A stretch of DNA of 64,000 nt from sequence record NC_070936.1; one strand, 5' to 3'. The notes under the pieces are model-generated. The model was not told the origin of the DNA, did not search any database, and was given only the letters and a program-made list of their open reading frames with translations. This document shows positions 1 through 60,512 of the stretch, one piece after another. The position numbers and the translations under genes were made by a program. The stretch's first letter is position 1. The number at the start of each line of letters is the position of its first letter.

Positions 1-3
1 CCA

Positions 4-33
4 ACACTCCTAGGGCTCAGGCTCTAGGAGTGT
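4..33 (+). terminator. Stem-loop, probable intrinsic terminator of upstream gene
   Basis: acactcctagggc-tcag-gctctaggagtgt inverted repeat followed by ttatg. Confidence 0.5.
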
Positions 34-50
34 TTATGTGAGGTAAGCTT

Positions 51-425
51 ATGTCGGAATTAATCAAACTAGAACAAATGGCCAAAGTAGTTCGTGGAGT
101 TTTATTATCATACAACTCTCGTGAATTGACGGGAATCAAGTATGGTGATCAAATTGCTGAAGCCAAGTTTGGTGTGTACGTTATGCGTTGTTACTTCTCA
201 GGTAAGAATGACAATAAGTACGCTACCGCCGTTCTTTACAAAGAAGATCCAGCTGGCGAATATCCTCCGGAAGAGATATTCCGTTTCTTCCCGACTGGTA
301 TTCAAAGTGAAATCGAATTTGCCATGCCTTTCTATTCCCGGATTATCCGTGGTAATGAAAAGGGTATTGTTTTACGTATGTTACAAGTAGCAGGAATTGA
401 AGATGCGATTAACGATGATCTCTAA
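51..425 (+). CDS. Hypothetical protein
   Basis: 124 aa ORF, gaggt RBS upstream, overlaps next gene. Confidence 0.7.
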   Translation: MSELIKLEQMAKVVRGVLLSYNSRELTGIKYGDQIAEAKFGVYVMRCYFSGKNDNKYATAVLYKEDPAGEYPPEEIFRFFPTGIQSEIEFAMPFYSRIIRGNEKGIVLRMLQVAGIEDAINDDL

Positions 426-819
426 AGCTCGACTGAAAGATATTTGTGAACATGTCTGCCGTCGTAAACGTTGTATTGGTAAGAACGTTCAAATCGGTAT
501 TCCTCATGGTGATGCAGTTGCCATCGCTTTAAAGGAAATTACCCACGACCTGTTCCAGGTTAATATGCGAGTGGACAATGGTGATAAGCCAGGCTTTGTC
601 GACTGCAAATGGGAAGGTATGGGTAATGATCGCCATATCTGCGTTAAAGCTGTCTTTATAGATTCTCGTGAGCCTAACAAAGTCCTGTTATCCACTTGGG
701 TGGATGAAGATGGAGCTGCTCATATTGAAGTCTATGAAGGGCGTTATACAGCCATTCTCAAAGTAGTAGTTCCTTCTGAACTAGAAGAATGGATTTCTAA
801 TTTCTTACGTGTTATCTAA
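397..819 (+). CDS. Hypothetical protein
   Basis: Co-oriented ORF overlapping previous stop; true start may be ATG 415. Confidence 0.7.
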   Translation: MKMRLTMISKARLKDICEHVCRRKRCIGKNVQIGIPHGDAVAIALKEITHDLFQVNMRVDNGDKPGFVDCKWEGMGNDRHICVKAVFIDSREPNKVLLSTWVDEDGAAHIEVYEGRYTAILKVVVPSELEEWISNFLRVI

Positions 820-828
820 TTTATTTTC

Positions 829-911
829 TACTATCTCTCTTATATATTGTCAGGGGGTAGGGGGTCTATCCGGAAGGATAATTTATATAAATTAGAGATT
901 ACGTAGTAATC
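829..911. repeat. Structured intergenic element, copy 1 (copy 2 at 45566-45649)
   Basis: cttatatattg..gggggtaggggg..tatcc-ggaa-ggata..ttatataaa..gattac-gta-gtaatc; same architecture at 45566-45649. Confidence 0.7.
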
Positions 912-928
912 ATCATGCAGGATTAGTT

Positions 929-1561
929 ATGAATACCTTTTACATTGTAACGTTTATTATCATTATCCTTCTTGGTTGTCTTTATCTTTATGGGGCAAGA
1001 CAAGATAAATTAAAAGCAATTGAAAAACTGAATAAAGTTAAAGAAAGATTGGATTATAACTTTGTACAGTTAATGAAGTATCAACGAGATACTAATAAGT
1101 TTAAAACCTATATTGATATTGTTGAGGAATGTATATCAATAATACAGTTAAGTGATTGCACCATTGGGGTTGAATTAGATATACTTGATCGTTCTGGTTT
1201 CGTAGAGATCATGATGAAGTATAAAGACATCAAAGCTTGTTACTATTTCATCCCACCTTACTCAGGAGAACTCAAAGATGAGATCACTGAACATCGTAAA
1301 AGTCTGTGGCGTAATGAAGTTGATTTGATTCTTCGTTATGCTCAGGAAGATCTAGTCCAGACAGTTAGTCAGGCACAGATTACTAAAGGCACCCATCTGT
1401 GTCGGGATGATTTGAGAGATATCCTGAAGACTCTTACTGAGAAACAACGTCATGTTTTATTTGTAGATTTCAAAATCTCTTATGACTGCGTGATGATTCG
1501 GACTCATCTTAAATCTGATTATTCTAAAACTGTGGAGCAAGTTATCCCAGTTCGTAACTAG
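929..1561 (+). CDS. N-terminally membrane-anchored hypothetical protein
   Basis: N-terminal hydrophobic FYIVTFIIIILLGCLYLYG followed by basic residues. Confidence 0.75.
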   Translation: MNTFYIVTFIIIILLGCLYLYGARQDKLKAIEKLNKVKERLDYNFVQLMKYQRDTNKFKTYIDIVEECISIIQLSDCTIGVELDILDRSGFVEIMMKYKDIKACYYFIPPYSGELKDEITEHRKSLWRNEVDLILRYAQEDLVQTVSQAQITKGTHLCRDDLRDILKTLTEKQRHVLFVDFKISYDCVMIRTHLKSDYSKTVEQVIPVRN

Positions 1562-1569
1562 GAGTTACT

Positions 1570-1821
1570 ATGAGCTTTATGGACATATTACCTTATTGCA
1601 TCATCATCTTACTTGCCGTACTAGTAAGCATTTGGTACAGGCTTCGTAAGCTAAAGCAAGGTGTTGAAACTAGCTATAAGTATACACAGCTAGGTCATTG
1701 CCGTGCTATGATGGTAATGCTTTTGAATCGTTATCTGCACGATGATGGTGAGATAACCAATGAGCACTTAGAGAGCTGTGTCTCAACGGTTAAACACTAC
1801 TTCCCCCGATGTGGATATTAA
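1570..1821 (+). CDS. Small membrane protein
   Basis: ILPYCIIILLAVLVSIWY TM-like stretch; aggag RBS. Confidence 0.7.
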   Translation: MSFMDILPYCIIILLAVLVSIWYRLRKLKQGVETSYKYTQLGHCRAMMVMLLNRYLHDDGEITNEHLESCVSTVKHYFPRCGY

Positions 1822-1936
1822 ATACGAAAGTATCGCAGGGTCATTCCAATACAAAATTAGTATTGGGAAATACTTCGTTACTATCGATGGGTACACGTAC
1901 CCACCTGAAGCCAATAAACCTTACTTTATTAAATGA
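1811..1936 (+). CDS. Possible 41 aa small protein, not in ORF track
   Basis: GTG at 1811 overlapping upstream stop reads VDIKYESIAGSFQYKISIGKYFVTIDGYTYPPEANKPYFIK*; fills an otherwise empty gap. Confidence 0.35.
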   Translation: MDIKYESIAGSFQYKISIGKYFVTIDGYTYPPEANKPYFIK

Positions 1937-2028
1937 GTAAGGATTCTCTGAATTCATTATGATCACTTTTGTGATCTAGTACCTGGACAATACTGTCCTC
2001 CATTACCTTAACTTAGGAAATCTTTAAA

Positions 2029-2724
2029 ATGATCTTTTCAGTAATGAATATCCGTGCCGTAGTTGTTCGTGTACTTCTGACTTTCATTGGTATGAACGCA
2101 GCAGTCATCAACTCTCGGTATAGTGCCATCCTGGCGAGTACTGAGAAACAACTCATTACTATCTGGGACCGCATGGGTGTCATCATGCTCCTGACCAAGG
2201 ATGAAAAGGGTCACTGGCATTTGAGCGTTTCCACAGGTACTGGTAACTCACCTTTCTTTGAGATTAAAGTAGGTAGTACCAACAATGTGTTTAACCGCCG
2301 TACTCTGAATGCACTGGAAGTTTGGTACCATTCAAACTTGCGTACTTACAAAGTGACATTTGATAATGCTGCCACCAATGCAGTAAAACAACTCGATATC
2401 CGTGGTTATATTACCGACATCGGTTTCATGGATCGTTTGTTTAACCGTAGTAAAGAAGTTGATATCAAGCTTCCAACTCCGCTGAATGAAATGATCAGTA
2501 TCCACCTGGATATCAAACGTTCTATCTTTAACAAGCTGATGGTATCGGTAAGTGTTAGTTCCCCAGCTATCACTAGCGACGGTAAATGTGGTAGTGCGCT
2601 AGAGACTCTGTTCCCTATCCACTTCGGCAACCTCCGTCAGTTCAATGCGAATATTGAACAGGAGCCGGTTAATGCTTATGTCCAACAAGCGATTATGGAT
2701 CACATCGAACATAATCTGAAATAA
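2029..2724 (+). CDS. Hypothetical protein, hydrophobic N-terminus
   Basis: 231 aa ORF, aggaa RBS, host-like codon usage. Confidence 0.75.
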   Translation: MIFSVMNIRAVVVRVLLTFIGMNAAVINSRYSAILASTEKQLITIWDRMGVIMLLTKDEKGHWHLSVSTGTGNSPFFEIKVGSTNNVFNRRTLNALEVWYHSNLRTYKVTFDNAATNAVKQLDIRGYITDIGFMDRLFNRSKEVDIKLPTPLNEMISIHLDIKRSIFNKLMVSVSVSSPAITSDGKCGSALETLFPIHFGNLRQFNANIEQEPVNAYVQQAIMDHIEHNLK

Positions 2725-2802
2725 TCTCTTCGGGGTGGTGGGTAAAACCGTCACCCCGTTTTGATACCACTTATTTTTATTTTTGTTAATGGAGTATCAA
2801 TC

Positions 2803-3195
2803 ATGATTGATTATGATATAAAAATTTTAGGTGGTGTAATACTGGCGATTGTTATTCTCTTGTTAATTGCTGCTATCTGGCTGGGATCTATTCTGCTTAA
2901 AGAAGCGGAGGAAATCAAAGCTGCATCAAAGAACGTTCAATCAGCTTTTAATGTGGTTAACGTTGAAGTAACAAGGAAACTCAAAAACAATCGAGCTATT
3001 CACTTTGCAGATCTTCTTTTGATCGTTGAGAAGGTAAGTAAGGTGATACCAGGGATAAAGGTTGAACTGGAGAAAAACTTCGAACTCAAACAAGTCAGTA
3101 TCGTGATTGAGAAAGATGGAATCAAAGCAACCTACACCTTACTGGCTACCATTGTTGAAATACCTTATCGTTCAGCACTGGCTAAAAACATTTAA
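2803..3195 (+). CDS. Membrane-anchored hypothetical protein
   Basis: ggag RBS before ATG 2803; TM ILGGVILAIVILLLIAAIWLGSILL. Confidence 0.75.
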   Translation: MIDYDIKILGGVILAIVILLLIAAIWLGSILLKEAEEIKAASKNVQSAFNVVNVEVTRKLKNNRAIHFADLLLIVEKVSKVIPGIKVELEKNFELKQVSIVIEKDGIKATYTLLATIVEIPYRSALAKNI

Positions 3196-3534
3196 AAATG
3201 AATCATGCAATGGAGATCTTTTATTTGAAAAAGTATTAGATTTCCATTGTATGTAGTCTTGCATTCTCATCTTACCTGTTTCTCCCCTTGGGGTAGGAAT
3301 GGGGATACAAGATTTTCTCTTCTTTTATCTTACTTTAAGGGGTTTGGGGTCAGATTTCATTCTCTTCTTCTTCTCTTACCTTTTAAGGTAATTATACTTA
3401 TTATATATTAAGTATATATAGAGTAAGTATGAGAACGAAGAGAAAACCCTTTTGAGAAAATTAAATTAATTATCCTAGTTATCCGTAAAGGGTAACTGGG
3501 GTGATAAACCTATGTTTAATTCAGGAGTATAGAA

Positions 3535-3798
3535 ATGAAGACTAAGAAAAAGAATAAAGGTATCTCACTTAAAGAACGTTCTGTAGATGTTCGTCTTGAG
3601 ATTCCCGATTTACAGAATCTGATAGAAAAACGTTTCAATGACAACTTACCAGTAACAGAAGTTAAAACGTGGATGCCTCCTTCTCAGGAAAGCGTTAATG
3701 AAGTTAACAAAATCTTGAAAGATGTTATCGAAGGTAAATCAGAAGGCAACCCTTTCGATCTCTATTCCGTCACACAACGCACCAAACCTCTAAAGTAA
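3535..3798 (+). CDS. Hypothetical protein, basic N-terminus
   Basis: aggag RBS, 87 aa. Confidence 0.7.
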   Translation: MKTKKKNKGISLKERSVDVRLEIPDLQNLIEKRFNDNLPVTEVKTWMPPSQESVNEVNKILKDVIEGKSEGNPFDLYSVTQRTKPLK

Positions 3799-3802
3799 GG
3801 AA

Positions 3803-4168
3803 ATGAAAATGAACAAAGTTATCGTTAAAAACTTCTATGATTCAATTAAAGCAGTTGCAGCAGAATTAATGGAAGAAAACGCCGTAGCTAAGTTAACTGA
3901 ACTTTTGCAACAACTTGAAAATGCCAATTATCACGGCGGTCATTTCGAGGTCAATGAAATAGTCTACAGCATCCGACCACGTGGGAATACAGATTACTGT
4001 GTCTGTATCTCTAATTTTAAAGATGGTGTTGAGACGGTATACGGGACAATCGATTTTGAAGATGGTTGCTTTGTTTACCGTAATCGAACCACCAGTGCTG
4101 AAACCATTTACAAAGATCTCATCAATAATCAAATCGAGATCTTGAAAATCTTTATCAATACACTTTAA
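3803..4168 (+). CDS. Hypothetical protein
   Basis: Tightly packed operon ORF. Confidence 0.7.
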   Translation: MKMNKVIVKNFYDSIKAVAAELMEENAVAKLTELLQQLENANYHGGHFEVNEIVYSIRPRGNTDYCVCISNFKDGVETVYGTIDFEDGCFVYRNRTTSAETIYKDLINNQIEILKIFINTL

Positions 4169-4177
4169 GGTAACATA

Positions 4178-4432
4178 ATGACTGATAAAATTTTAATAGA
4201 TCGTGATCTACTACAGCGTTTAGTAGATGCAGCATATGACTTCCACCCAGCTAATAAAGCTGCTGATGAAGGTCAGGAAATTTTGGACAGGCTGGAAGCT
4301 AAACCAGAGTTAACCTTTAACGATCAATTCCTTCGCGACGTTATTGAAGGAGAGCGTAGTCGTAACATCCACGTTATTCAAAAGTGGTGTGAAGATAATG
4401 GTTATGAACTCGTAGCTAAAAAGGATCTGTAA
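4178..4432 (+). CDS. Hypothetical protein
   Basis: aaggt RBS; stop overlaps next start. Confidence 0.7.
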   Translation: MTDKILIDRDLLQRLVDAAYDFHPANKAADEGQEILDRLEAKPELTFNDQFLRDVIEGERSRNIHVIQKWCEDNGYELVAKKDL

Positions 4433-4812
4433 TGGATATCGTGATCATAGCACTAGATGTCTTTATTGGGTTTGCTCTTGGTTACTTAACCAGAGAGCTT
4501 TTGACTAAACGCAAACAACGTAAAGAGAAAGCTAAAGAAGCGACAGCATTGATCAAGGAAATGGAACTTCCTCCTAAGGCTGTACTGAATGCAATAGCGA
4601 TTCATCTTACTTCAGTATTCTCAATCAAATATCTCACCAGTGTGGATGAGTGTGAAGAGTTTATTGAATCTGAACTCAATCGTTATCTTGGTCTAGCTAA
4701 AGAACTGACATGGCGATATCGTTGGACAGCTCCAGATGCAATGGAGCTGAGAATTAGCTATAAAGGCCAGACCATGAAACTGGGTCTTGCAATAACCGTA
4801 ACTAAAAGGTAA
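4432..4812 (+). CDS. Membrane-anchored hypothetical protein
   Basis: TM IVIIALDVFIGFALGYLT followed by KRKQRK positive-inside patch. Confidence 0.75.
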   Translation: MDIVIIALDVFIGFALGYLTRELLTKRKQRKEKAKEATALIKEMELPPKAVLNAIAIHLTSVFSIKYLTSVDECEEFIESELNRYLGLAKELTWRYRWTAPDAMELRISYKGQTMKLGLAITVTKR

Positions 4813-4818
4813 ATGTAA

Positions 4819-5175
4819 ATGGCGCATTACTTAGAAATCGATTTAGTCCCTAAAGAACTGGTGGGTGAGAAGAAAAGCATCGGGTATTGTGATATCGAAT
4901 CTAAAGATATCCGTGGAGTATTTTCAGAACCTCGCACTACCGATCATAACGATGTTCTTCGTGGGATCTTCAAAGCCGATTGGGATGATTGTGATTATTA
5001 TGTACTCACACCAGAATTGGTAGATGAGATCATTGCTAAATTCAGCAAAATGGATCTTGAAGATTTATTCATTGAACCTGATCAACACAACCGCATTATG
5101 AAAGCCATGCGTGCAGTTCAGGACAATATGGATCCTAACTCGGAAGTTTGTTACGTTATTAGTTGGAGTAAATAG
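4819..5175 (+). CDS. Acidic hypothetical protein
   Basis: 118 aa ORF in operon. Confidence 0.7.
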   Translation: MAHYLEIDLVPKELVGEKKSIGYCDIESKDIRGVFSEPRTTDHNDVLRGIFKADWDDCDYYVLTPELVDEIIAKFSKMDLEDLFIEPDQHNRIMKAMRAVQDNMDPNSEVCYVISWSK

Positions 5176-5531
5176 TGAGAACTTTAGAATCATTCCGTAA
5201 TGAGTTATGTGAACTTACTGCACATGCTCTTGATAACCTGGTTATTCAAAATAAGCCAGAATTCCAAACCGTGCAAAAACATAATGGCGGTGGTCCTGAA
5301 AACCATGCACCAACTGAAGTAACTTTTACTCGTGAAGGCCCTTTGGAAATCATCACCATTCCTTTCTACGGTAAGGAAGTGAAGCTGCGCTTTAAGTTTG
5401 GATATCCTCGTGATACCATTCCACAAGGTGTGCTGGATCGCTTCAAAGACAATCGTGACAATAACGTGAAGAATATTGCTATAATGTTTAACCACGTTAT
5501 CCATGAAGTGTTTGAAACACAACCTAAGTGA
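5175..5531 (+). CDS. Hypothetical protein
   Basis: GTG start overlapping previous stop, ggag RBS. Confidence 0.65.
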   Translation: MRTLESFRNELCELTAHALDNLVIQNKPEFQTVQKHNGGGPENHAPTEVTFTREGPLEIITIPFYGKEVKLRFKFGYPRDTIPQGVLDRFKDNRDNNVKNIAIMFNHVIHEVFETQPK

Positions 5532-5535
5532 TACC

Positions 5536-5991
5536 ATGAAAGAAAACGATGATGGTCTCATTGAACTGGATTCACGCAACCTTGATGAGTTTCTCTATAA
5601 ACTCGGATCGGATGTTGGTCGAAGTGTTTGGTGGAAACTATGGATTAAAACCAAGTGGAAACTTGAAGCCATCAGGGAAAAGTTAGAAGGTTCCAATGAG
5701 GAGATTAATTTCTTACATTATGACCTTCGCCACTTAGGATACGCCAAACGTAAAAACCAACCACTCAGACTACGTTACTTTAATAAGCATGGTGAACTTA
5801 AAAGCGCCCGCTTTATTGTGACCTGGTCTTATGGTTCCTATCTTATCAAGGAAAGTAAATTCCCTTTAGTCAAACCAGGTAAACCTCTTAAAGGTCCAAT
5901 GACTATTAAGAAGGGAAGATGTTATAAGAGGAAGATATCCTTTACTGGATTCGTTCGCTCTTGGGAAGTATCATTCAACTCAACTCTATAA
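5536..5991 (+). CDS. Basic hypothetical protein
   Basis: ATG 5536 just after the previous stop (track start 5503). Confidence 0.65.
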   Translation: MKENDDGLIELDSRNLDEFLYKLGSDVGRSVWWKLWIKTKWKLEAIREKLEGSNEEINFLHYDLRHLGYAKRKNQPLRLRYFNKHGELKSARFIVTWSYGSYLIKESKFPLVKPGKPLKGPMTIKKGRCYKRKISFTGFVRSWEVSFNSTL

Positions 5992-6004
5992 GGAAACGTA
6001 ATAA

Positions 6005-6340
6005 GTGGAAACTAAAGCTGGAAACCGTTCTGTATCTAAAGCTGCACTGAAAGCCACAATCCGTGATGGGATGTTGGAAGCATTTAAATCTAACCAACCT
6101 GTAGTGGAAGAGTTAGAAGTAGAAACCATCCTAGGGAAAATGCGTTTTAAAACCCGCCCAACTTCCCCGGACCATGTGACTATCATTTATCTGAACGGAC
6201 ACCGCCTTTATAAAGTTATGGTCGATTGCCGTCAGTCTCGTGATCGCATTGAGTTCGCACAGTACATCGAAGAGAAACTCTCTCGTGAATCATTCGATCG
6301 TCAGTGTGACAAAGTCCTGAGCTACCCTATTACTAAATAA
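6005..6340 (+). CDS. Hypothetical protein
   Basis: aagga RBS, GTG start, followed by terminator. Confidence 0.65.
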   Translation: METKAGNRSVSKAALKATIRDGMLEAFKSNQPVVEELEVETILGKMRFKTRPTSPDHVTIIYLNGHRLYKVMVDCRQSRDRIEFAQYIEEKLSRESFDRQCDKVLSYPITK

Positions 6341-6345
6341 CCTTT

Positions 6346-6377
6346 AACTATCACCTCCAAAAGGGGTGATAGTTTTT
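6346..6377 (+). terminator. Intrinsic terminator
   Basis: aactatcacctcc/aggggtgatagtt stem followed by T-tract. Confidence 0.75.
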
Positions 6378-6397
6378 AGTTCTTATTTGTTTTGAAA

Positions 6398-6419
6398 TAG
6401 ATATTATTAGATTGAATAA
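6398..6419 (+). promoter_or_regulatory. Putative phage (early-type) promoter
   Basis: tagatattattagattgaataa matches the recurrent ATATTATY motif; resembles phiKZ early TATATTAC. Confidence 0.55.
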
Positions 6420-6446
6420 CCCAACATTATTTTAAAGGAGTTTAGA

Positions 6447-7058
6447 ATGACCTTGATCAATAAAGCATTTGCTCAACAAGCCAAAGAAGAAATCATTAAA
6501 CACCTCCGTACTCAGCTGGAAGGTAAGGCAAATAGCAATACCTTTAACCTGAAAGATTCGGGTATTACAGTCACTATCCGAACCACCGCTAACCCTCACA
6601 CCAAGTTGACCAAGTTCGAAGTTTATGTCTTTGATCGAATGGTGGGAAGCGGGGAAGTTAAGTTTGACAAAAAGATCCAGTTAGAAAAGTCTTTTGTTGA
6701 AACTTTACCTGATTTCATCATGACTCATTTGCTTGGGTACATTATCGATGATTCTGGAACTGCCGAAGCTATTGACAATATGCTTCGTGGAATTACTTCT
6801 GGTACTGAAGTGGAACATCCATTTGGAATGAGTATTAAGTTCCATAGCGATGATGATCACCAGGTATTAATGATCACTAAAGGTAAAGATGTCCTCTATG
6901 CCTTAGAAGAGGCAGTTAATCTCAATGAGGGTATCGGGACCGATCTGTTTACTCCAGTCGAGCAACTTAAATATCGGATTAACAAAGTTCTCGCCCATTA
7001 CACCATTCGTGAAGACTTTGGTGTCGAGTATGACTTTGGTACTGGTGCACAATTTTAA
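6447..7058 (+). CDS. Hypothetical protein
   Basis: aaggag RBS, 203 aa. Confidence 0.75.
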   Translation: MTLINKAFAQQAKEEIIKHLRTQLEGKANSNTFNLKDSGITVTIRTTANPHTKLTKFEVYVFDRMVGSGEVKFDKKIQLEKSFVETLPDFIMTHLLGYIIDDSGTAEAIDNMLRGITSGTEVEHPFGMSIKFHSDDDHQVLMITKGKDVLYALEEAVNLNEGIGTDLFTPVEQLKYRINKVLAHYTIREDFGVEYDFGTGAQF

Positions 7059-7073
7059 TTTAAGGAAATAAAA

Positions 7074-7706
7074 ATGATCGTTAGTAAAGAGTGCCTGCGT
7101 AAGCTGGCAGAGTTAACTATCTCCCGTTTAGTTATTGATGGAACTCAAATCGCTTGGTCTGGTGGTTATCAGATCAATTTACTTTCTGGTAACATTGACA
7201 TTCTCATTGATGTGAAGTTATCAGAAATTGATGATTATGGTGTCCGATTGGCACTTCATCATCAAGGAACTACATTGGGTATGGTAATCATTAAAGATTG
7301 CCGGATGTTCACCCGTGACGCACTCAAAGAAGAATTGGGTAAATGGGTGGAACAAACAAAGACTTACCTTATTAATAACTACGCTAAATGGTTAGTAGGT
7401 AAGTACATCAAAAATGATTTACAGGTCAAGCATTGGACTTGTGCCGCATCAACCAATGACAAAATTGGCTCCATGGTAATTTGTGACGTTCGCTTTAAAG
7501 CAAAAGTCCAAACCAATACGGCATGGTTACAAGTCGAAGATAAAGACGTTGTAATCTACAAAGTGGAGCGATCCAATTTCCTGAACATGACAACCAAACA
7601 AGGTTGGCAGGGAATGAACATCAATACTGTTACTGCTGAATTAGGCCGTGTTATTTCTACACTGCTTTTCCAGCGTGATAATTTTGTTATACCGGTAACG
7701 TTGTAA
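7074..7706 (+). CDS. Hypothetical protein
   Basis: aaggaa RBS, 210 aa. Confidence 0.75.
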   Translation: MIVSKECLRKLAELTISRLVIDGTQIAWSGGYQINLLSGNIDILIDVKLSEIDDYGVRLALHHQGTTLGMVIIKDCRMFTRDALKEELGKWVEQTKTYLINNYAKWLVGKYIKNDLQVKHWTCAASTNDKIGSMVICDVRFKAKVQTNTAWLQVEDKDVVIYKVERSNFLNMTTKQGWQGMNINTVTAELGRVISTLLFQRDNFVIPVTL

Positions 7707-8026
7707 TGGCACTACCCAAGAAACATTTACCACGAGTAACTAAATTCGTGGAGATCGTTTTGGGGATGGTGGTAAGAGAAGAATTATCCAGGAACTTCTA
7801 TAAACGAGGTGTTCTGGATAGTAACTATGTACTGACGTTGGAAAACAACATTCTTCTCCCTCCATATAACGATGACCGCATTGAGTTCATTGCTGAAGTG
7901 AATGACAAGAAAGCTGGACCATTCACTATTACCGGTAAGGACTTAGCCGAACATCACCTTGATCCTAAACTTGTTAAAGAAGTGGTTCAGGGAATTATGA
8001 AAATCCGCATTAAGGAAATAAAATGA
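7706..8026 (+). CDS. Hypothetical protein
   Basis: TAATG coupling to upstream gene. Confidence 0.7.
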   Translation: MALPKKHLPRVTKFVEIVLGMVVREELSRNFYKRGVLDSNYVLTLENNILLPPYNDDRIEFIAEVNDKKAGPFTITGKDLAEHHLDPKLVKEVVQGIMKIRIKEIK

Positions 8027-8727
8027 AGTTTACTGTTAAAGAGCTAATGGCTGCTGAACCACAAATGGTGGAAGTCATCAAAGTCTTAGTTCGCAAGATG
8101 ATGATCTTAAATGATCTGCAACAGGAATCCATGGAAACAGTAATCGAGTTCCCAATCATTCCAGACGCACCGGAGCATCCTAAGCTTGTCTTCAAGATCA
8201 AGAAAAATTCATTGCGAACTCTCGGTATTGATGTCAAGGAGCAGATCACTGCTACAGTAAATATCCTTGCTCGCTTACCATGTGTTTTCAAAATGGAAAA
8301 GGAAGACATTGAACGCGGGTATTGTAAAGAAGAAGATATCGAAAGGATCTCCAAAGCCTATCTTCGTGAAATTGCCATGGGAATGTCAACCCATTGGTTA
8401 AATGACTCCGGTTATTTAGAACAGGCAATGAAATACTTGGATAATGACGAGATCCAAGAACTTCGTGATCAGTTTGATGGAATGATCGATGTTCATTATA
8501 ATGACACCGGAGCATCCATTGCTTTACTAAGCAGTCGTGGTGAACCTATTGCCACTGAAGCTAAATTTGCCAAGGTGGATATTGATGGATTCAATTTCTG
8601 TACCAAAGATAGATTCAAAGAGTTCGTCAAGCAAAAGCTTCCGAACTATATTCGTTATGGCTGGGCATTTAGCGGTCATTACGAAATCTGGAAATCTCCA
8701 ATCACTAAACCTGTAGAGGAAATCTGA
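8023..8727 (+). CDS. Hypothetical protein
   Basis: aaggaa RBS, 234 aa. Confidence 0.75.
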   Translation: MKFTVKELMAAEPQMVEVIKVLVRKMMILNDLQQESMETVIEFPIIPDAPEHPKLVFKIKKNSLRTLGIDVKEQITATVNILARLPCVFKMEKEDIERGYCKEEDIERISKAYLREIAMGMSTHWLNDSGYLEQAMKYLDNDEIQELRDQFDGMIDVHYNDTGASIALLSSRGEPIATEAKFAKVDIDGFNFCTKDRFKEFVKQKLPNYIRYGWAFSGHYEIWKSPITKPVEEI

Positions 8728-8728
8728 A

Positions 8729-9190
8729 ATGCTGACTCTGAAAAATAAATTAGCTATCCTGTTTGATAACGAACAAGATCGTGAAGAACTGGAAACCCTG
8801 GTTCATACTGCTCGTACCACCATCATCCGCCGTACACTTCGTGATATCATCAATAATTCTTCTGCAATGGGTATTGGTGATCTGGAAGAAGGTTCCGCAC
8901 TGATCACTGAAGAAGAACTGGCTTCCGGCGTACCCGTAACGTTTGATCTGCTTCAGGTAGATACTCCAATCATCGTTCGTGCAACTATTCAGCGTTATGG
9001 TGATGTGGGTAGTAACTACGTCACACTTCAAATCGATGTTAAATTGAGTGAGCGCAAGCCAAGCTACCTGATGCAACATAACGTCACTACTCTGTTTGTA
9101 GAGTCGGTATCAGTACCTCGTCTGTGGAAACGTATCGATCGCATTCTGAAAGATGTTCCATCCCTGGCCGCACCACTGTTGGCTAACTAA
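8729..9190 (+). CDS. Hypothetical protein
   Basis: gagga RBS, high-expression codon usage. Confidence 0.75.
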   Translation: MLTLKNKLAILFDNEQDREELETLVHTARTTIIRRTLRDIINNSSAMGIGDLEEGSALITEEELASGVPVTFDLLQVDTPIIVRATIQRYGDVGSNYVTLQIDVKLSERKPSYLMQHNVTTLFVESVSVPRLWKRIDRILKDVPSLAAPLLAN

Positions 9191-9241
9191 ATAACTGGGG
9201 AGGTCAACCCTCCCTAATTTTAATAGATCAAGGAAATAGAA

Positions 9242-9568
9242 ATGAAAATCGCATCTGAGAAAATCGCCCGCACCGTAGCTAAACACGCAAATGCCTTTGC
9301 TAAATTCGATTCCAAGTTGGGATCCACTGTCTCCATCATGCTGGCAGATGGCGAAACTAACCGCACCCTGCAATCTAAACTCTACGGCTACAACTCTAAT
9401 CGTACCGGCATCATTATCGAAGTCCGTATCGATGGGTTACTGTTGGATCGCGTTACTCTGACTCGCCCTCAACCGCAGGGTGATTTCCAACATAAGTTTA
9501 AAGTTGATTACACCAAGCTGTACCACATTGCCGCCAAAGAAGGCAACAAAGCTCCCGTAGACGAATAA
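9242..9568 (+). CDS. Hypothetical protein
   Basis: aaggaa RBS, high-expression codon usage. Confidence 0.75.
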   Translation: MKIASEKIARTVAKHANAFAKFDSKLGSTVSIMLADGETNRTLQSKLYGYNSNRTGIIIEVRIDGLLLDRVTLTRPQPQGDFQHKFKVDYTKLYHIAAKEGNKAPVDE

Positions 9569-9577
9569 GGTGGAATT

Positions 9578-10033
9578 ATGCAACGATACGAGTTTACTAT
9601 TGAGAAGGGTACGCTGGTAGTCCACGATCAAGTAACTAACGGGTCGTTGCGTATTATTTTCAAACCTTTAGGTAAACCGACGATCTCCCCAGCTTTAGAA
9701 GCTTGGAACGATCTAGAAACATCACTCAACTCAGGGAAACTTGAGTTGGGTTTGTTCGGTGTAAATACGATCACTGAACGTAAAGGCTTTAAGTTAGAAG
9801 GTAAGGTCGTGCTGTCATCATCTCACCTTTATGACTGTGAAGTACGCAACGGCAATCTTCATATGGTGTCATTCAAACAGAAGACACTTATCTCTGAATC
9901 CACATTACGATATATGGGTTCTAACAAATTCGGTTTAGTTGCTTTTAAAGACTGTTTCTTTAAAAGTAATCCAGAAGGTGGTTTTAAAAGTAGAACCACT
10001 TCTTACTTCAAAAACAAACTAGTAGAGGTTTAA
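9578..10033 (+). CDS. Hypothetical protein, paralog of 10035-10538
   Basis: Aligns by eye with the next ORF. Confidence 0.7.
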   Translation: MQRYEFTIEKGTLVVHDQVTNGSLRIIFKPLGKPTISPALEAWNDLETSLNSGKLELGLFGVNTITERKGFKLEGKVVLSSSHLYDCEVRNGNLHMVSFKQKTLISESTLRYMGSNKFGLVAFKDCFFKSNPEGGFKSRTTSYFKNKLVEV

Positions 10034-10034
10034 A

Positions 10035-10538
10035 ATGAACAATTCTCAAGTAGGTCGTTGGAATGTAATCCTTGATGGTAAACTGATCAAAGTGGTTGAT
10101 CGTCAAACTGGCGGTGAGTTGAACATTCACACTACCCACCATCCAGATCCAGGTGAAAATGATCTTAACCCAACCATCGAGATCATTAACGATCTGATTG
10201 AACAGCTGGCTGAACATCGCCTTATTCTTCAGCTGATCGGTAAAGAAAACAACATCTATGTGACCGGAACTAATGTGGTACTGGATGGTAGTGTTTCACT
10301 GCATCGTTGCGATCTTCGTAACCCGCATCTGACTGATGTTGAATTGCGTATCGTCGACACACGCGAAGCCGATCAAGTTCGCATTAACAAATCTACGGTA
10401 TATGAATTCACTTCACCTAAACTTGAAAGTGAACTTCATATTTCCCACTGTCATTTCACTGGTGAACTCAAACCACGTGTCACTAGTGCTCGTACTGAGT
10501 TCTACCTGAATGAATGTCGTAATGGAGATATGTGGTGA
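10035..10538 (+). CDS. Hypothetical protein, paralog of 9578-10033
   Basis: Aligns by eye with the previous ORF. Confidence 0.7.
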   Translation: MNNSQVGRWNVILDGKLIKVVDRQTGGELNIHTTHHPDPGENDLNPTIEIINDLIEQLAEHRLILQLIGKENNIYVTGTNVVLDGSVSLHRCDLRNPHLTDVELRIVDTREADQVRINKSTVYEFTSPKLESELHISHCHFTGELKPRVTSARTEFYLNECRNGDMW

Positions 10539-10879
10539 TAGAAATCAAAGATGGTCTGGTTGACATCTCTGTCTTTGTTACCTTTACCAGACCGATAATC
10601 GAAGGGGTGACAAAGGTACCTGGCGAATTAGGTTATGTTGTTCTAATGGACAAATTACCTAACCGCTTCCCAAATGGCATTGAGTCATTTAAGATGCACT
10701 TCTTGAATTACTTAGATAACCATAATTTACAGCAGGGATATCCATACAACTTAGTTGAGGATTTCCCTATCCGTGTTCTAAACTCTCTCCGCATCTTAAA
10801 ACTTGCAGGTTGTATCAAAGGGTACGACATTGACGATCGGGGAATTATTTCTTATTGCGAGGAAGATGAAGATGACTAA
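10532..10879 (+). CDS. Hypothetical protein
   Basis: ggag RBS, GTG start overlapping previous stop. Confidence 0.65.
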   Translation: MVIEIKDGLVDISVFVTFTRPIIEGVTKVPGELGYVVLMDKLPNRFPNGIESFKMHFLNYLDNHNLQQGYPYNLVEDFPIRVLNSLRILKLAGCIKGYDIDDRGIISYCEEDEDD

Positions 10880-12623
10880 TACTGCTAAAGACATTATCGG
10901 CGCACTTATTTACAACACTAGTGTTCAGTTAGATTTCCCTGATCACAAAAATAAAGAAGGTAAAGTCGACCCTGACAATATCGTAGCCAACTTTGATATG
11001 GTAGAAAGTGGGTACTTGCAGTTTCAGGGTAAAATTTATAGCAAAGATGAACTTACGTCTCTCGTTAACCAAGCGATCTCTCATCGCAATGGTAGTATTC
11101 TTATTGACATCCTTAAGGAATCTGGTAAGATTAAAGACTTCCCTCCGGCGTTTATGGAGAAACTTTATATCACTGCATTTGAGCAAGCTGGTTTTAGTTT
11201 ATACCCTGTTTCCAACCGTAAAGAAATCGATGGTAAGTTATTCGACGTTCCCGAAAAATACCGTACCGGTGTTGGGTATCCTTCAGATAAAGAAGTGGTC
11301 GCTCTTTGCCATTTCTACCTGAAAGGTATCAAGGGTTACGAAGACCCAGAGTCTAAGAAAACCTATCGCAACAAACTGTTTAACCTGTTGCATGTTTATG
11401 CGCACTTGCAGGAAAGTGTTTTGACAGAATCGCTGGGTGTTGAATGGGTTGCCAACTTTAAAGAAGGCAATAAAACATTTGAAGATTTCAAACAGGCTAT
11501 CGATATGGCTACTCAAGGGGAATCCCTTAAATACACTCGTGAAGAACAACCGTATATTTATTTCCAAGGGCGTGTTCATTTGAATGGCCCAGTAGCGATA
11601 CATTCTCCAAATGACCCTGATGAAGAAATCAAGTTCTTGACTAACATCATGGAAAACACTGAAGATCAAGAAAGCGTGGTATTTACCAAGGCCATCGCTT
11701 TTATTCATCGCAGTGCATTCCAACAGGAAATCTATCATTTCCTAACCAGCCTGTATGATGAAAATGAACAGTACTGGCTTGCGGATAATCGCCAACGCGC
11801 TGACTTTGTTTTCAACCTAGTTGGGCGCTATATGGAAGAGTGTCGTGCTAAAACTAAAATCGCATCCACTCGTTATTCTGAACAACCACGTGACCCACAA
11901 CCTACACAAGGAAAAGAACAAATGTTTAATAGCAATCTGACACAAGCGATCCAATTCCTGGCTCATGCCCGTGGCGTGTCGGTAGAAACTTTAGTTGGGG
12001 AACTGAAACAGCAACTTGGTAACAAACAAGTTACTGAGCAACCTAAAGTTCAAATCTCTGGTCCTGATGGTGAAATGCTCGATCAGCTGAAACAAATCTT
12101 CGGTGATGATTGTGTCATCGTTCCTATCTCACAGGGCGATGATATTTCAGAAGCTATTGCCAAAGCTATCGGTAATAAGAAACCTAGCAAAGAACAAGAG
12201 CTGGAGAAAGGTCTGGATGACCTTACCAGTCGTTGGGCTGAAATCCTGGGTGTCACTGATCCAGAAGCTATCGCGCATCTTCGTGCTGCTGCAGCCAAAA
12301 GTGTTCAGCCAAAGGACGAAGTTAAACGTCCTATTACTACTGAAGTCAGACATGCCAGAACTATGGAGTTTGAAGTTCTTGGCGAACATAACGAAGTAGA
12401 AGAACGTTATCGTGGCCTCTGGAATGAAACCACCAAACTGCTGACTATTAATTATAAATCAGTTGGGATGGACTCATATAGTCAGTTAGTTTGTATTCAG
12501 TTTATGGACTACTCTGATGCTGTCTCTACATTTATCGGAATGTGTCATAACTACGGCATCAAGTCAGTTCGCGAAATCATCCAGGATTTTGTTGAAGCTT
12601 ATAACGGTCACTTCATCGAATAA
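10872..12623 (+). CDS. Large hypothetical protein with probable internal start at 11922
   Basis: Long ORF; ATG 10872 overlaps upstream stop; internal aaggaaaagaacaaATG. Confidence 0.75.
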   Translation: MTNTAKDIIGALIYNTSVQLDFPDHKNKEGKVDPDNIVANFDMVESGYLQFQGKIYSKDELTSLVNQAISHRNGSILIDILKESGKIKDFPPAFMEKLYITAFEQAGFSLYPVSNRKEIDGKLFDVPEKYRTGVGYPSDKEVVALCHFYLKGIKGYEDPESKKTYRNKLFNLLHVYAHLQESVLTESLGVEWVANFKEGNKTFEDFKQAIDMATQGESLKYTREEQPYIYFQGRVHLNGPVAIHSPNDPDEEIKFLTNIMENTEDQESVVFTKAIAFIHRSAFQQEIYHFLTSLYDENEQYWLADNRQRADFVFNLVGRYMEECRAKTKIASTRYSEQPRDPQPTQGKEQMFNSNLTQAIQFLAHARGVSVETLVGELKQQLGNKQVTEQPKVQISGPDGEMLDQLKQIFGDDCVIVPISQGDDISEAIAKAIGNKKPSKEQELEKGLDDLTSRWAEILGVTDPEAIAHLRAAAAKSVQPKDEVKRPITTEVRHARTMEFEVLGEHNEVEERYRGLWNETTKLLTINYKSVGMDSYSQLVCIQFMDYSDAVSTFIGMCHNYGIKSVREIIQDFVEAYNGHFIE

Positions 12624-45097: not shown

Positions 45098-45553
45098 ATG
45101 TTCAAATATAATAACCCAGCCCATAACGAAGCCGAACTATCTTTCCGCCAGTTAGTGACTCAGCCATTCTTTAAAGATCTTAAACATGACTTTATTCACA
45201 ATTTCAAAAATATGTGTTACCACTCATCTATAGGTAACCTATTTGCCAACCAATACATCAAACCAGATGCCAAAGTACGACTGGTAAGAGAGATTGTTGG
45301 GTGTGACCCTATTTGTAAGATCTCCATGTCCTGGGATCAGGAAGATGAAGTACTTACCCTCATGAACGGTGTTATTATTGAATTGAAAACGGAACGTTTA
45401 AATGCGTCTAAGGCGTTCCTGGCAATGTCTGCCGATAAAGAGCAAATAGGATTTGATATCGAGATCCATGTTCACTTTAAGACCGGGATTAAATCAGTAT
45501 ATAAAGTACCTAATAATAAACTTAAAGAAGCTTTGATTATTGCTTTAGGTTAA
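45098..45553 (+). CDS. Paralog family member A1
   Basis: AELSFRQL..FIHNFKNMCYHSSIGNLF; aligns with 45697-46146. Confidence 0.75.
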   Translation: MFKYNNPAHNEAELSFRQLVTQPFFKDLKHDFIHNFKNMCYHSSIGNLFANQYIKPDAKVRLVREIVGCDPICKISMSWDQEDEVLTLMNGVIIELKTERLNASKAFLAMSADKEQIGFDIEIHVHFKTGIKSVYKVPNNKLKEALIIALG

Positions 45554-45565
45554 TATTTTTATTAT

Positions 45566-45649
45566 ACTCTATTTCTTATATATTGGGGGTAGGGGGTTAA
45601 TTCCGAAGGAAAGTTATATAAACTTAAAGGAACGATAGTGACTTCCTTT
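45566..45649. repeat. Structured intergenic element, copy 2 (copy 1 at 829-911)
   Basis: cttatatattgggggtagggggttaattcc-gaa-ggaaagttatataaa..aaaggaac-gata-gtgacttccttt. Confidence 0.7.
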
Positions 45650-45696
45650 TATGTTATTCTCTTTTAAGTAAACTAATTAAACAAGGAAATATAGAA

Positions 45697-46146
45697 ATGA
45701 ATAAGTTCAATAAAGCAGCTATTAACCGTGCAGAGCAATCTTTCCGTGATCTGTTGAAACTAGATATCATGAAAGATGTTAAGAAACAATTCATTCATGA
45801 CTTCAAGAACCTGTGTCATCATTCTGATGTAGGCAACTTGTTTGATCATTACCTGGTAAGTAAAGTGGGCGATGTTAATCTGGTTTATGCCGCAATCAAT
45901 CAGATTGTTGAATGTGGGGACACTCCATTCATTTCAGAGATCGTAGAGGGTCTGAACGCAGTAGCTATTGAACTGAATCCTGAACGAGCTGGCGTCCGAC
46001 GAGCTTATTTGATGATCTCTGCAGATACTGCACAAATTAAACCAGTTGCTGAAATCCACGTTCATTACTATAGCGTTGGTAAAGTAATTTACCCAGTTAA
46101 AACTGATAACCTGCACAACACTCTGCTACTAGCAATCGGTAAATAA
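45697..46146 (+). CDS. Paralog family member A2
   Basis: AEQSFRDL..FIHDFKNLCHHSDVGNLF; aaggaa RBS. Confidence 0.8.
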   Translation: MNKFNKAAINRAEQSFRDLLKLDIMKDVKKQFIHDFKNLCHHSDVGNLFDHYLVSKVGDVNLVYAAINQIVECGDTPFISEIVEGLNAVAIELNPERAGVRRAYLMISADTAQIKPVAEIHVHYYSVGKVIYPVKTDNLHNTLLLAIGK

Positions 46147-46347: not shown

Positions 46348-47412
46348 ATGACCATACTGATTTATAAAGATACAAATTTCGATATGTTCACTCCAATTCA
46401 ATCTGTATTGGGAGTAGATGATTTAAGTGAAGAAGAAAAAGTAAGAGCCAGAGAAGAACATATCAAAGAACAACTATTGAAAAACCCTCGCTATTACTGC
46501 TGGGATTATTTAAATTACTATAGAACGACTAGAGATAGTGATCTAAAAGAAGGGGAACTCTATCAACCATATATCATGGTTTCATCTAGAGGTGAGATAG
46601 CCTGGTGGATGCCAGAAGAAAATGAAGTTCATGTTACCACCGGAACTCATTCTGCTAATTACCTGATGACGCATATATATGACGATGAAAAGGAAGCATT
46701 TAAAAATATCTACATTCATCGTGCCGTTGCTTCTACCTTTATAAGTAAAAAGGAATCGCATAAAGATATACCTTACTCTAAACTTCAGGTTAACCATAAA
46801 GATGGTAATAAATTATGCCCTCATTTCGGTAATCTAGAATGGAGTACCCAATCTGAAAATAGACAACATGCAATAGACACTGGATTAGTTAAGTCTGGAA
46901 TTGATGATCCAAATACTAAACCAGTACTTGGAACAGTCGTAGTAGATAGCATGTGGAAGGGAACACAGTTTGTTATTTATGGTAGAACCGCTATAAAGAA
47001 TCTTGGTTTAGATCCAGCATCCATTCAACAGACAGTGTCAGGTAAAGCTAAAACTACATATGGATGTTCATGGTCATATATAACCAGGGAAGAAGCTGCC
47101 ACGTATACAAACACAATACCACCTCAATTACTTGATAGAATGGTTAATGATGGTGTAACTTTACTATCTACGACCAAACCAGTTATGGGGACTATAGTAA
47201 TTCCTGGAAAACACCAAGGTGATAAGTTCGTATGCTACGGTGGTAAAGAACTAACTAAGTATGGTTTCCAGCAAGCCCATGTGAGCAGGGCCACCAAAGA
47301 TCCATCAATAGTTAGAAGCGGATGTGTTTGGGAGTATGTTGATTTAAGAAAGGCAGAGACATTACCTAGAGGAATAACTGAAGAACAAAGAGTTACACTA
47401 TTTGGTAAGTAA
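46348..47412 (+). CDS. Free-standing HNH homing endonuclease with two C-terminal DNA-binding repeats
   Basis: IHRAVASTF..QVNHKDGNK....GNLEWSTQSENRQHA (I-HmuI/HNH_3 type); two TKPV.GT repeats; AT-rich AGA/ATA codons. Confidence 0.9.
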   Translation: MTILIYKDTNFDMFTPIQSVLGVDDLSEEEKVRAREEHIKEQLLKNPRYYCWDYLNYYRTTRDSDLKEGELYQPYIMVSSRGEIAWWMPEENEVHVTTGTHSANYLMTHIYDDEKEAFKNIYIHRAVASTFISKKESHKDIPYSKLQVNHKDGNKLCPHFGNLEWSTQSENRQHAIDTGLVKSGIDDPNTKPVLGTVVVDSMWKGTQFVIYGRTAIKNLGLDPASIQQTVSGKAKTTYGCSWSYITREEAATYTNTIPPQLLDRMVNDGVTLLSTTKPVMGTIVIPGKHQGDKFVCYGGKELTKYGFQQAHVSRATKDPSIVRSGCVWEYVDLRKAETLPRGITEEQRVTLFGK

Positions 47413-53070: not shown

Positions 53071-53107
53071 CTCCCTACTCCCTCCGAAAGGAAGGGGTAG
53101 GGGTTTT
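53071..53107 (+). terminator. Intrinsic terminator
   Basis: ctccctactccctcc-gaaa-ggaaggggtagggg-tttt. Confidence 0.75.
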
Positions 53108-54543: not shown

Positions 54544-54585
54544 CATAACCCCTACCCCTCCTTTCGGAGTGGGTAGGGATCTATG
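54544..54585. terminator. Bidirectional hairpin between convergent genes
   Basis: cataacccctacccctcc-tttc-ggagtgggtagggatctatg. Confidence 0.7.
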
Positions 54586-60471: not shown

Positions 60472-60512
60472 CATACTCCCTACCCTTCCTTACGGAGGGG
60501 TAGGGGGATATG
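60472..60512. terminator. Bidirectional hairpin between convergent genes
   Basis: catactccctacccttcc-ttac-ggaggggtagggggatatg. Confidence 0.75.

Follow-up and report, generated by a model that had tools for sequence, protein, structure and literature searches.

A previously undescribed family of hairpin elements in OBP-like jumbo phages that may be transcribed as structured RNA

What is the role of a short non-coding element that a jumbo phage carries in several copies between its genes, with stem sequences that change and pairing that is kept? The question is raised by two intergenic segments of the Klebsiella jumbo phage N1M2, copies A and B, located in a window of 64,000 nucleotides from record NC_070936.1; by megablast, this window is identical (100%) to bases 1-64000 of the N1M2 genome (MN642089, 253,367 bp), which was handled as loci L001-L006, with the same sequence as the window where they overlap. 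Copy A lies in the gap from the stop of N1M2_2 at 819 to the start of N1M2_3 at 929, and copy B in that from the stop of N1M2_61 at 45553 to the start of N1M2_62 at 45697. A preliminary description of the window had pointed out two copies with an ordered set of blocks, and all the blocks that it named are present where it placed them. Copies A and B are real members of a previously undescribed family of hairpin elements of OBP-like jumbo phages, and they may well be transcribed structured RNA modules (leaders or short RNAs) with a non-canonical promoter of their own. N1M2 was called OBP-like in the paper describing it, which lists 31 sites of a single promoter motif (TBYAWWWWWTTTCARRYAKATATTATYWAAGTGWA) and predicts 56 terminators (PMC7058600). 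The annotation of its record includes both a virion and a non-virion multisubunit RNA polymerase (RNAP), as beta and beta' fragments.

How are the two copies built? The G tract of the element, the 12-mer GGGGGTAGGGGG, and its core or 5' box, the 11-mer CTTATATATTG, occur exactly twice each in the 253 kb N1M2 genome, both times together and in identical order, at copies A and B, and the observed G-tract count was reached in none of 100 shuffles. Read on the + strand, both copies start with an AT-rich box 1 (TTTATTTTCTAC-like), followed by a spacer of ~7 nt, the core CTTATATATTG, the G tract, a first hairpin (H1), an AT box (TTATATAAAT-like), a second hairpin (H2), and a tail (ATCCTAC or ATCCTYT). 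In copy A, box 1 (AATTTATTTTCTAC, 818-831) begins at the stop codon of N1M2_2; then come the core (839-849), a putative -10-like element that resembles the ATATTAT core of early promoters, the G tract (853-864), which would be the 5' end of a transcript and the 5' strand of a closing helix, P2, H1 (TATCC-GGAA-GGATA, 867-880), the conserved AT-rich box (ATTTATATAAATTAGA, 881-896), predicted to be single-stranded, H2 (GATTAC-GTA-GTAATC, 897-911), and the tail (ATCATGCAGG, 912-921), the counterpart of ATCCTAC/ATCCTYT elsewhere and the putative 3' strand of P2. No T run follows H2 in this copy, and the Shine-Dalgarno (SD) sequence and ATG of N1M2_3 (919-931) lie just 3' of it. Copy B likewise begins with an AT-rich box 1 at a stop codon, that of N1M2_61 (ATATTTTTATTATAC, 45553-45567), and continues with the core (45575-45585), the G tract (45585-45596; GGGGGAAGGGGG in the orthologue of Shewanella phage SXP01), H1 (TTCC-GAA-GGAA, 45601-45611), the conserved AT-rich box (AGTTATATAAACTTA, 45612-45626), H2 (45626-45649), and a pyrimidine/U-rich tail (TATGTTATTCTCTTTT, 45650-45665) that can pair with the G tract and is like the tails of N1M2 terminators. 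The limits first drawn for the two copies, 829-911 and 45566-45649, enclose the right blocks but start too late, the conserved unit beginning ~20 nt further upstream with the AT-rich box right behind the stop codon. The second hairpin that had been described in copy B exists, but it is a composite rather than a simple structure, with an outer stem of 7 bp (AAAGGAA/TTCCTTT), a 3' bulge, and a mini-hairpin of 2 bp inside (AC-GATA-GT, 45632-45639).

Are there further copies, and how far does the family extend? A search of the genome and of related phages, and a covariance model, had been proposed as the check on the two initial copies; they brought two more N1M2 copies, syntenic orthologues and covariation to light. 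N1M2 holds at least four copies, two of them outside the window, at ~166.6 kb (type C) and ~74.5 kb (type D), and copy number in the family is low, with three to four per genome. When window positions 600-1150 were compared with phage records by blastn, Yubaba and Sureiya matched along the genes, while Shewanella phage SXP01 and Kosakonia phage Kc263 matched query positions 218-336 only (window 817-935), namely the intergenic element; no relative of the N1M2_3 protein was found in SXP01 or Kc263 at E <= 1e-3. On these comparisons, the element is better conserved across genera than its flanking genes. With short queries, blastn also brought in OBP and the Aeromonas phages LAh10, D3, D6 and D9. 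Syntenic copies of type A are present in six phages, of type B in four (copy B being retained behind the N1M2_61 orthologue in Yubaba, Sureiya and SXP01), and of type C, which adjoins nrdB, in no fewer than 12 phages or contigs.

Type C was encountered in a local search, in which the exact 18-mer of H2, GATTACGTAGTAATCATC, recurs at N1M2 position 166653; this 18-mer is present in copies A and C of N1M2 and also in Yubaba, Sureiya, LAh10 and D6. The type C copy adjoins nrdB in divergent orientation, and occupies the same site in OBP, pEt-SU, Survivor, SXP01, Kc263, AH04 and LAh10/D6, as well as in uncultured contigs of 260-271 kb. When nine type C copies were used to build a covariance model and 295 kb were searched with it, type A copies were recovered from N1M2 (E 1e-4), Yubaba, Sureiya and SXP01 (type A E values of 1e-4 to 0.013), together with the fourth N1M2 copy, type D (74467-74547, E 0.02). 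Type D is followed by a canonical terminator and is kept in Sureiya, and no copy was found at that site in the more distant relatives SXP01, Kc263, pEt-SU and AH04. In types C and D, the box and core (CTTATATTATTTAC or CTATTATTTAG) are followed after 10-20 nt by H1, the G tract, the AT box TTTGTTTATATAC, H2, and ATCCTYTTT, and in type C the canonical early promoter of the next gene comes after ATCCTYTTT. The order of modules is therefore permuted within the family, H1 being 3' of the G tract in A/B and 5' of it in C/D, and the AT-rich box is conserved in all types (type C consensus TTTGTTTATATA). The region upstream of the AH04-type type C copies aligns with that upstream of N1M2 copy A, so that the 5' box of A/B corresponds to the type C TATTAT core.

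Scans of IMG/VR with two composite patterns and with the N1M2_61 protein gave no matches; the type C pattern returned only OBP, pEt-SU and one new contig from IMG/VR, and nothing from the metagenome and genome collections, while an exact 19-mer (H2 plus ATCC) found four or five new phage-like contigs and three chance matches. A divergent copy is carried by the metagenome contig JACCDZ011269227.1 (L030:700-960), with AT box and H2 intact and the G tract turned into a purine tract, GGAAAAAGAAAAGAAGAAG. No family of Rfam 15 was matched (best E values 0.59 and 1.9, far below gathering scores), the tRNA search program ARAGORN reported nothing at the elements, and no paper describing the motif was found in the literature; structured leader and small-RNA elements are known as a kind in phages, and it is the family itself that is undescribed. 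Two candidate links were dropped. An NrdR box for type C is a 7-nt half match in N1M2 only, and by eye is unconserved in the other phages. A link of copy D with the conserved small RNA (sRNA) upstream of phiKZ gp182 homologues was rejected, as the 201phi2-1 homologue of N1M2_91, the gene downstream of copy D, lies at 109 kb and, on position alone, is probably not gp277, the neighbour of the conserved sRNA005, and copy D is missing at that site in four relatives.

Evidence that these elements are structured comes from the two hairpins. H1 is paired in 60/60 cells of a hand-registered table of 15 non-redundant copies, and H2 in 70/72 cells of the non-redundant copies, values equalled in 0/5000 shuffles in either case. 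MAFFT was unable to align H1, which leaves model R1 with a noisy H1, and H1 was tabulated by script because its variable distance to the G tract defeated the program. Stems differ while pairing is kept, as had been claimed from copies A and B, and compensatory changes are seen in both hairpins among orthologues and paralogues. For example, the two outer pairs of H1 each occur as A-T, T-A, C-G and T.G, H1 stems within N1M2 alone read ATCC, TTCC and CACC, and the TTCC-GAA-GGAA of copy B is TCCC-GGA-GGGA in its SXP01 orthologue. In the alignment, pairing of H2 reaches 98%, and three of the six pairs are altered on both sides across phages; in type B, both pairs of the mini-hairpin are flipped between SXP01 (GT-GATA-AC) and N1M2 (AC-GATA-GT), and one A-T pair of the outer stem has become G-C in Yubaba. 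Loops vary from 3 to 5 nt in H1 and from 3 to 4 nt in H2, GNA and GNNA alternating at the same position, and wobbles on the + strand are always T.G and never A.C. Such loop lengths and T.G-only wobbles point to a hairpin in the single + strand rather than to a duplex site for a dimer. Compensatory changes and strand-specific wobbles, which generally characterize a structured RNA, are both observed here; the covariation of H1 and H2 would also fit a hairpin in + strand single-stranded DNA (ssDNA).

The stability first attributed to the hairpins was not supported. They had been called ultra-stable, but their predicted ssDNA energies amount to just -1.4 to -3.5 kcal/mol. Their loop class is not rare, with 122 C-G-closed G..A loops on the + strand versus ~92 in first-order random sequence, so that the loop class alone is weak evidence; close pairs of such hairpins number four, versus 0-5 in random sequence. 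A proposed pairing of the 5' TTATATA with TATATAA is kept in register, as expected from the conservation of both boxes, and is reached by 54/500 shuffles; it would be moot if the 5' box is promoter DNA.

What does the G tract do? Its sequence, GGGGGTAGGGGG, is that of the 3' arm of the common terminator stems of N1M2, which make up a family of nearly identical repeats: CCCTACCC(N)(T/C)CC, then a loop and GGAGGGGTAGGGG, most often with a TTATGTTTG tail in place of a plain T run, GGGGTAGGGG being the 3' arm in the family form CCCTACCC...GGGGTAGGGG plus TTATGTTTG. Members lie in the window at 53071-53104 (+), 54548-54578 (-) and 60480-60507 (+), and elsewhere in the genome at 84036, 99509-99554, 115859-115915, 187904-187944, 232501-232545 and 247875-247919. 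The common stem sequence of these terminators suggests copying or recognition by a factor, and the TATG in their tail is reminiscent of the phiKZ late-promoter motif. Within the element, the G tract can pair with the pyrimidine tract 3' of H2 (UCCUAC or CCUCUUCC in orthologues) to form the putative helix P2. This helix appears in the single-sequence minimum free energy (MFE) structure of 9/10 type C/D copies, with z-scores down to -3.8, and also in Yub_A, SXP01_A, OBP_A, N1M2_B and Yub_B when these are folded from the G tract; its duplex energies are within the best 1-17% of random 12-mers, and the interruption of the G tract (UA vs A) tracks the partner sequence (UCCUAC vs CCUCUUCC). In the type C copy of N1M2 (L004:16664-16680), and in type C copies of other phages, the tail after H2, AAUCAUCCUUUA, resembles the 3' end of 16S rRNA, GAUCACCUCCUUA; it pairs with the SD-like G tract, and P2 looks like an SD/anti-SD duplex. 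Two other roles for the tract were considered and rejected. Pairing with an upstream CT tract scored no better than slid registers and was dropped, since any CT tract pairs with G runs. An intramolecular G-quadruplex with four G runs in all copies is not conserved: A/B carry two G5 runs, splittable into four GG only with at least five G per run, Sureiya_A and Kc263_A read GGGG-TA-GGGG, and contig L030 has its purine tract.

From where would such an element be transcribed? Across the A/B copies of six phages, box 1 equals the G tract in conservation, type C copies have a similar box upstream, and a 34-nt profile of box 1 and core finds only A and B in the whole N1M2 genome, indicating an element-specific signal rather than a general class of promoters. 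The copies had been said not to look like the usual promoter, and this was borne out: a position weight matrix (PWM) for the early promoter (TTTCARRYAKATATTATYWAAGTG), built from 24 N1M2 sites, gives -13.4 for A, -9.6 for B and -12.0 for C versus >15 for 29 genuine sites, A and B are absent from the published N1M2 promoter list, and only an ATATTAT-like core is common to the elements and the canonical early promoter. In the OBP copy, the core and start region match the OBP early-promoter consensus at 14/16 positions. Type C has no co-directional gene upstream, and a canonical terminator separates SXP01_B from its upstream gene, so that, if the elements are RNAs, the box must be their promoter. 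We infer that the AT-rich bipartite box is a non-canonical, element-specific promoter, which in A/B would start near the G tract. As a separate observation on the canonical promoter, all 29 strong matches of the early-promoter profile are on the + strand (in the window at 6391, 21531, 26938, 31345, 36525, 41630, 46205 and 53123), and none on the - strand, where many virion genes are located.

Taken together, we favour, at a middling level of confidence, the view that the elements are structured RNA modules. In the mechanism that we envisage, box 1, the ~7 nt spacer and the ATATTAT-like core would act as promoter, and transcription of A/B would start at or just before the G tract; the RNA would then fold into H1 (short, C-G-closed, with a GNRA/GNA loop), a single-stranded AU-rich box and H2, the whole domain being closed by a G.U-rich P2 between the G tract and the UCCUYU tract after H2. 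Types A and B may form the 5' leaders of N1M2_3 and N1M2_62, while types C and D may stand alone, type C in the terminator slot before an early promoter, and type D with a canonical terminator after it, each giving a short RNA. Control would probably be in cis, by way of translation, the stability of the leader, or conditional termination with a short RNA as its product, or the module may be a platform for a protein. The RNA reading fits best because wobbles are confined to the + strand, P2 is rich in G.U pairs, the box is specific to the element, and the copies sit in leader or terminator-slot positions; the terminator after type D and a precedent in other phages fit as well. In phiKZ and 201phi2-1, many short RNAs are made from 5' untranslated regions (UTRs) through early termination (PMC10914365, PMC11512511). 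These are likewise short structured stretches with a phage promoter on one side and a gene on the other, conserved in position among relatives, in jumbo phages with two multisubunit RNAPs. Unlike the N1M2 elements, which are known from sequence alone, they are defined by mapped 5' and 3' ends, and the N1M2 family differs from them in being multi-copy within a genome, with a permuted module order and no sequence relation shown.

Several results weigh against this RNA reading. Folding energies of the whole element are mostly no better than those of shuffles (z -0.2 to -1.9), the stems of H2 are short and rich in A and T, and C-G-closed GNA triloops are more familiar as stable motifs of DNA than of RNA. 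In the type C alignment, changes in P2 are all one-sided, the helix is weak in N1M2_A (-1.2 kcal/mol), and it is not part of the MFE structure of SXP01_B or Kc263_A. To these may be added the low early-promoter scores of A, B and C, the status of the promoter and start-site assignments, which are guesses, and the lack of a match in Rfam.

Which other explanations could account for the same sequences? The preliminary description had listed replication initiation, ssDNA recognition and non-coding RNA as possible functions; the last fits best, and the first two gain no support from GC skew. That the elements are replication origins, either transcription-primed or based on ssDNA hairpins, is unlikely, and it is slightly less likely still that they are the replication start sites long sought in jumbo phages of the phiKZ/OBP type, three to four per genome and conserved across genera. 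Under this explanation, the element-specific promoter would fire into the G cluster of the non-template strand and leave a stable R-loop, the displaced + strand would fold into C(GNA/GNRA)G mini-hairpins and the AT box would melt, yielding a primer or an entry site for helicase and primase, as at T4 oriF/oriG or ColE1. The order of promoter-like box, G tract and AT-rich box on the non-template strand, kept in all copies, suits it, as do the low copy number, a box that is used nowhere else in the genome, the one-strand wobbles, an alternation of GNA and GNNA as expected of DNA mini-hairpins, and the RNase H and DnaB-like helicase that N1M2 encodes. R-loop origins (T4 oriF/oriG, ColE1 RNA II, mitochondrial CSB II) indeed also combine a promoter, a G-rich non-template stretch and an AT-rich segment, but the covarying hairpins have no counterpart there. 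Moreover, cumulative GC skew tracks gene orientation, with no turning point at 0.85, 45.6, 74.5 or 166.6 kb (a weak test for phages), the ssDNA hairpin energies given above are small, a G.U-rich P2 would be poor in DNA, and type D is lineage-specific. The note 'SPP1 replication initiation' on N1M2_165, the sole such annotation near the copies, is misleading, as the gene is an HNH endonuclease. The hairpin promoters of the N4 virion RNAP are similar in their low copy number, in the strand-specificity of the signal, and in their small hairpins (3-nt loop, 5-7 bp stem) beside conserved sequence; the N1M2 hairpins are instead, relative to the genes next to them, on the non-template strand, at a distance of 15-60 nt downstream from the promoter-like core, and the elements combine two of them with a G tract. 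The whole-genome annotation of N1M2 contains no N4-type single-subunit virion RNAP, no dedicated protein search having been made.

It is improbable that the elements work like lambda nut or HK022 put, as RNA that modifies the phage RNAP in cis for read-through of strong terminators, or as RNA acting in trans through its G tract on the C-rich arm of the CCCTACCCC...GGGGTAGGGG terminators. Like these sites, they are present in a few paralogous copies downstream of special, promoter-like boxes, combine linear boxes with hairpins with GNRA-type loops (as boxA/boxB do), and keep their structure while stem sequences diverge; the A/B G tract exactly complements the C arm of at least ten N1M2 terminators, and the type A operon contains a strong terminator (2731-2758). 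However, the polymerase is another one, there is no N-like or Nus context and no sequence or Rfam match, and the gene context of types B and C needs no read-through, as type B precedes only one or two genes before a strand switch, and a canonical promoter comes right after type C; furthermore, the one SXP01 terminator seen (GGGTAGTAGGG arm) mismatches the SXP01 G tracts. We consider it just as improbable that the inverted repeats are dimer half-sites in double-stranded DNA at which a DNA-binding protein of the phage, such as a regulator or a partition or packaging factor, would bind. The palindrome of H2 is nearly perfect, with an exact 18-mer shared by the phages listed above, and box 1, core, G tract and AT box are conserved in sequence, beyond pairing, but the half-sites are not at a fixed distance, being 3, 4 or 5 nt apart in H1 and 3 or 4 nt in H2, T.G is tolerated on one strand and A.C never, and the different H1 stems of N1M2 would require several proteins. 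Finally, might the elements simply be decayed or rearranged terminators without a function of their own? The identity of the G tract with the terminator 3' arm, and the likeness of H1 to the terminator tip (CC-GAAA-GG, or more generally CC-G(N)AA-GG), would be explained in this way, and copies B, C and D also share a pyrimidine/U-rich tail with terminators, type C occupying the slot just before an early promoter. The elements nevertheless differ from N1M2 terminators in having no C-rich 5' arm, the partner of the G tract, if any, being the downstream pyrimidine tract, and in carrying, in addition, an AT box, H2 and an upstream box of their own; across genera they are better conserved than the genes beside them, compensatory changes are found in both hairpins, and the flanking boxes are conserved, all of which makes a remnant very improbable. 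A working terminator was not recognized at copy A either, in line with the initial view that these are not the usual terminators of the genome: A and B are absent from the published ARNold terminator list of N1M2, a generic scan of positions 1-12000 lists none at 829-921, and, in place of the G+C-rich stem-loop and T run of an intrinsic terminator, copy A has an AT-rich H2 and no T run; copy B and types C and D, with their pyrimidine/U-rich tail, may still be compatible with one.

Gene control in jumbo phages with their own multisubunit RNAPs is poorly understood: early promoters are known, while middle and late signals, and control at the RNA level, mostly are not. The present family is a multi-copy non-coding element that is better conserved than its neighbour genes in phages of Klebsiella, Serratia, Pseudomonas, Edwardsiella, Pantoea, Shewanella, Kosakonia, Erwinia and Aeromonas. 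The family may represent a new class of promoter used by one of the phage polymerases, a new group of leaders or small RNAs in phages or, less probably, the replication start sites of these phages, and its promoter-like box and hairpins would be compact parts for engineering these phages.

The genes around the copies offer few clues of their own, as no Pfam or PHROG family was found for N1M2_1-4, 61, 62 or 167. N1M2_61 (45098-45553) and N1M2_62 (45697-46146), on either side of copy B, are paralogues, and SXP01 has a single copy of the gene, followed by the element. N1M2_63 (46348-47412) and N1M2_165 (L004:14495-15292), both annotated as hypothetical, are HNH homing endonucleases; N1M2_63 is found in Sureiya and is absent from that site in Yubaba. 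Between N1M2_6 and N1M2_7, a stretch of 340 nt without genes (3195-3535) contains G tracts (GGGGTAGGAATGGGGA, GGGGTTTGGGG) along with extended CT-rich tracts and a palindrome rich in A and T (TATACTTATTATATATTAAGTATATA), and model R1 gives no match to it. Positions 5175-5503 are intergenic by annotation and coding-like in sequence, and may correspond to a missed gene or to an extended N1M2_12. Lastly, the record itself begins within a terminator-like inverted repeat (1-35), AACACTCCTAG...CTAGGAGTGTT, followed by TATG.

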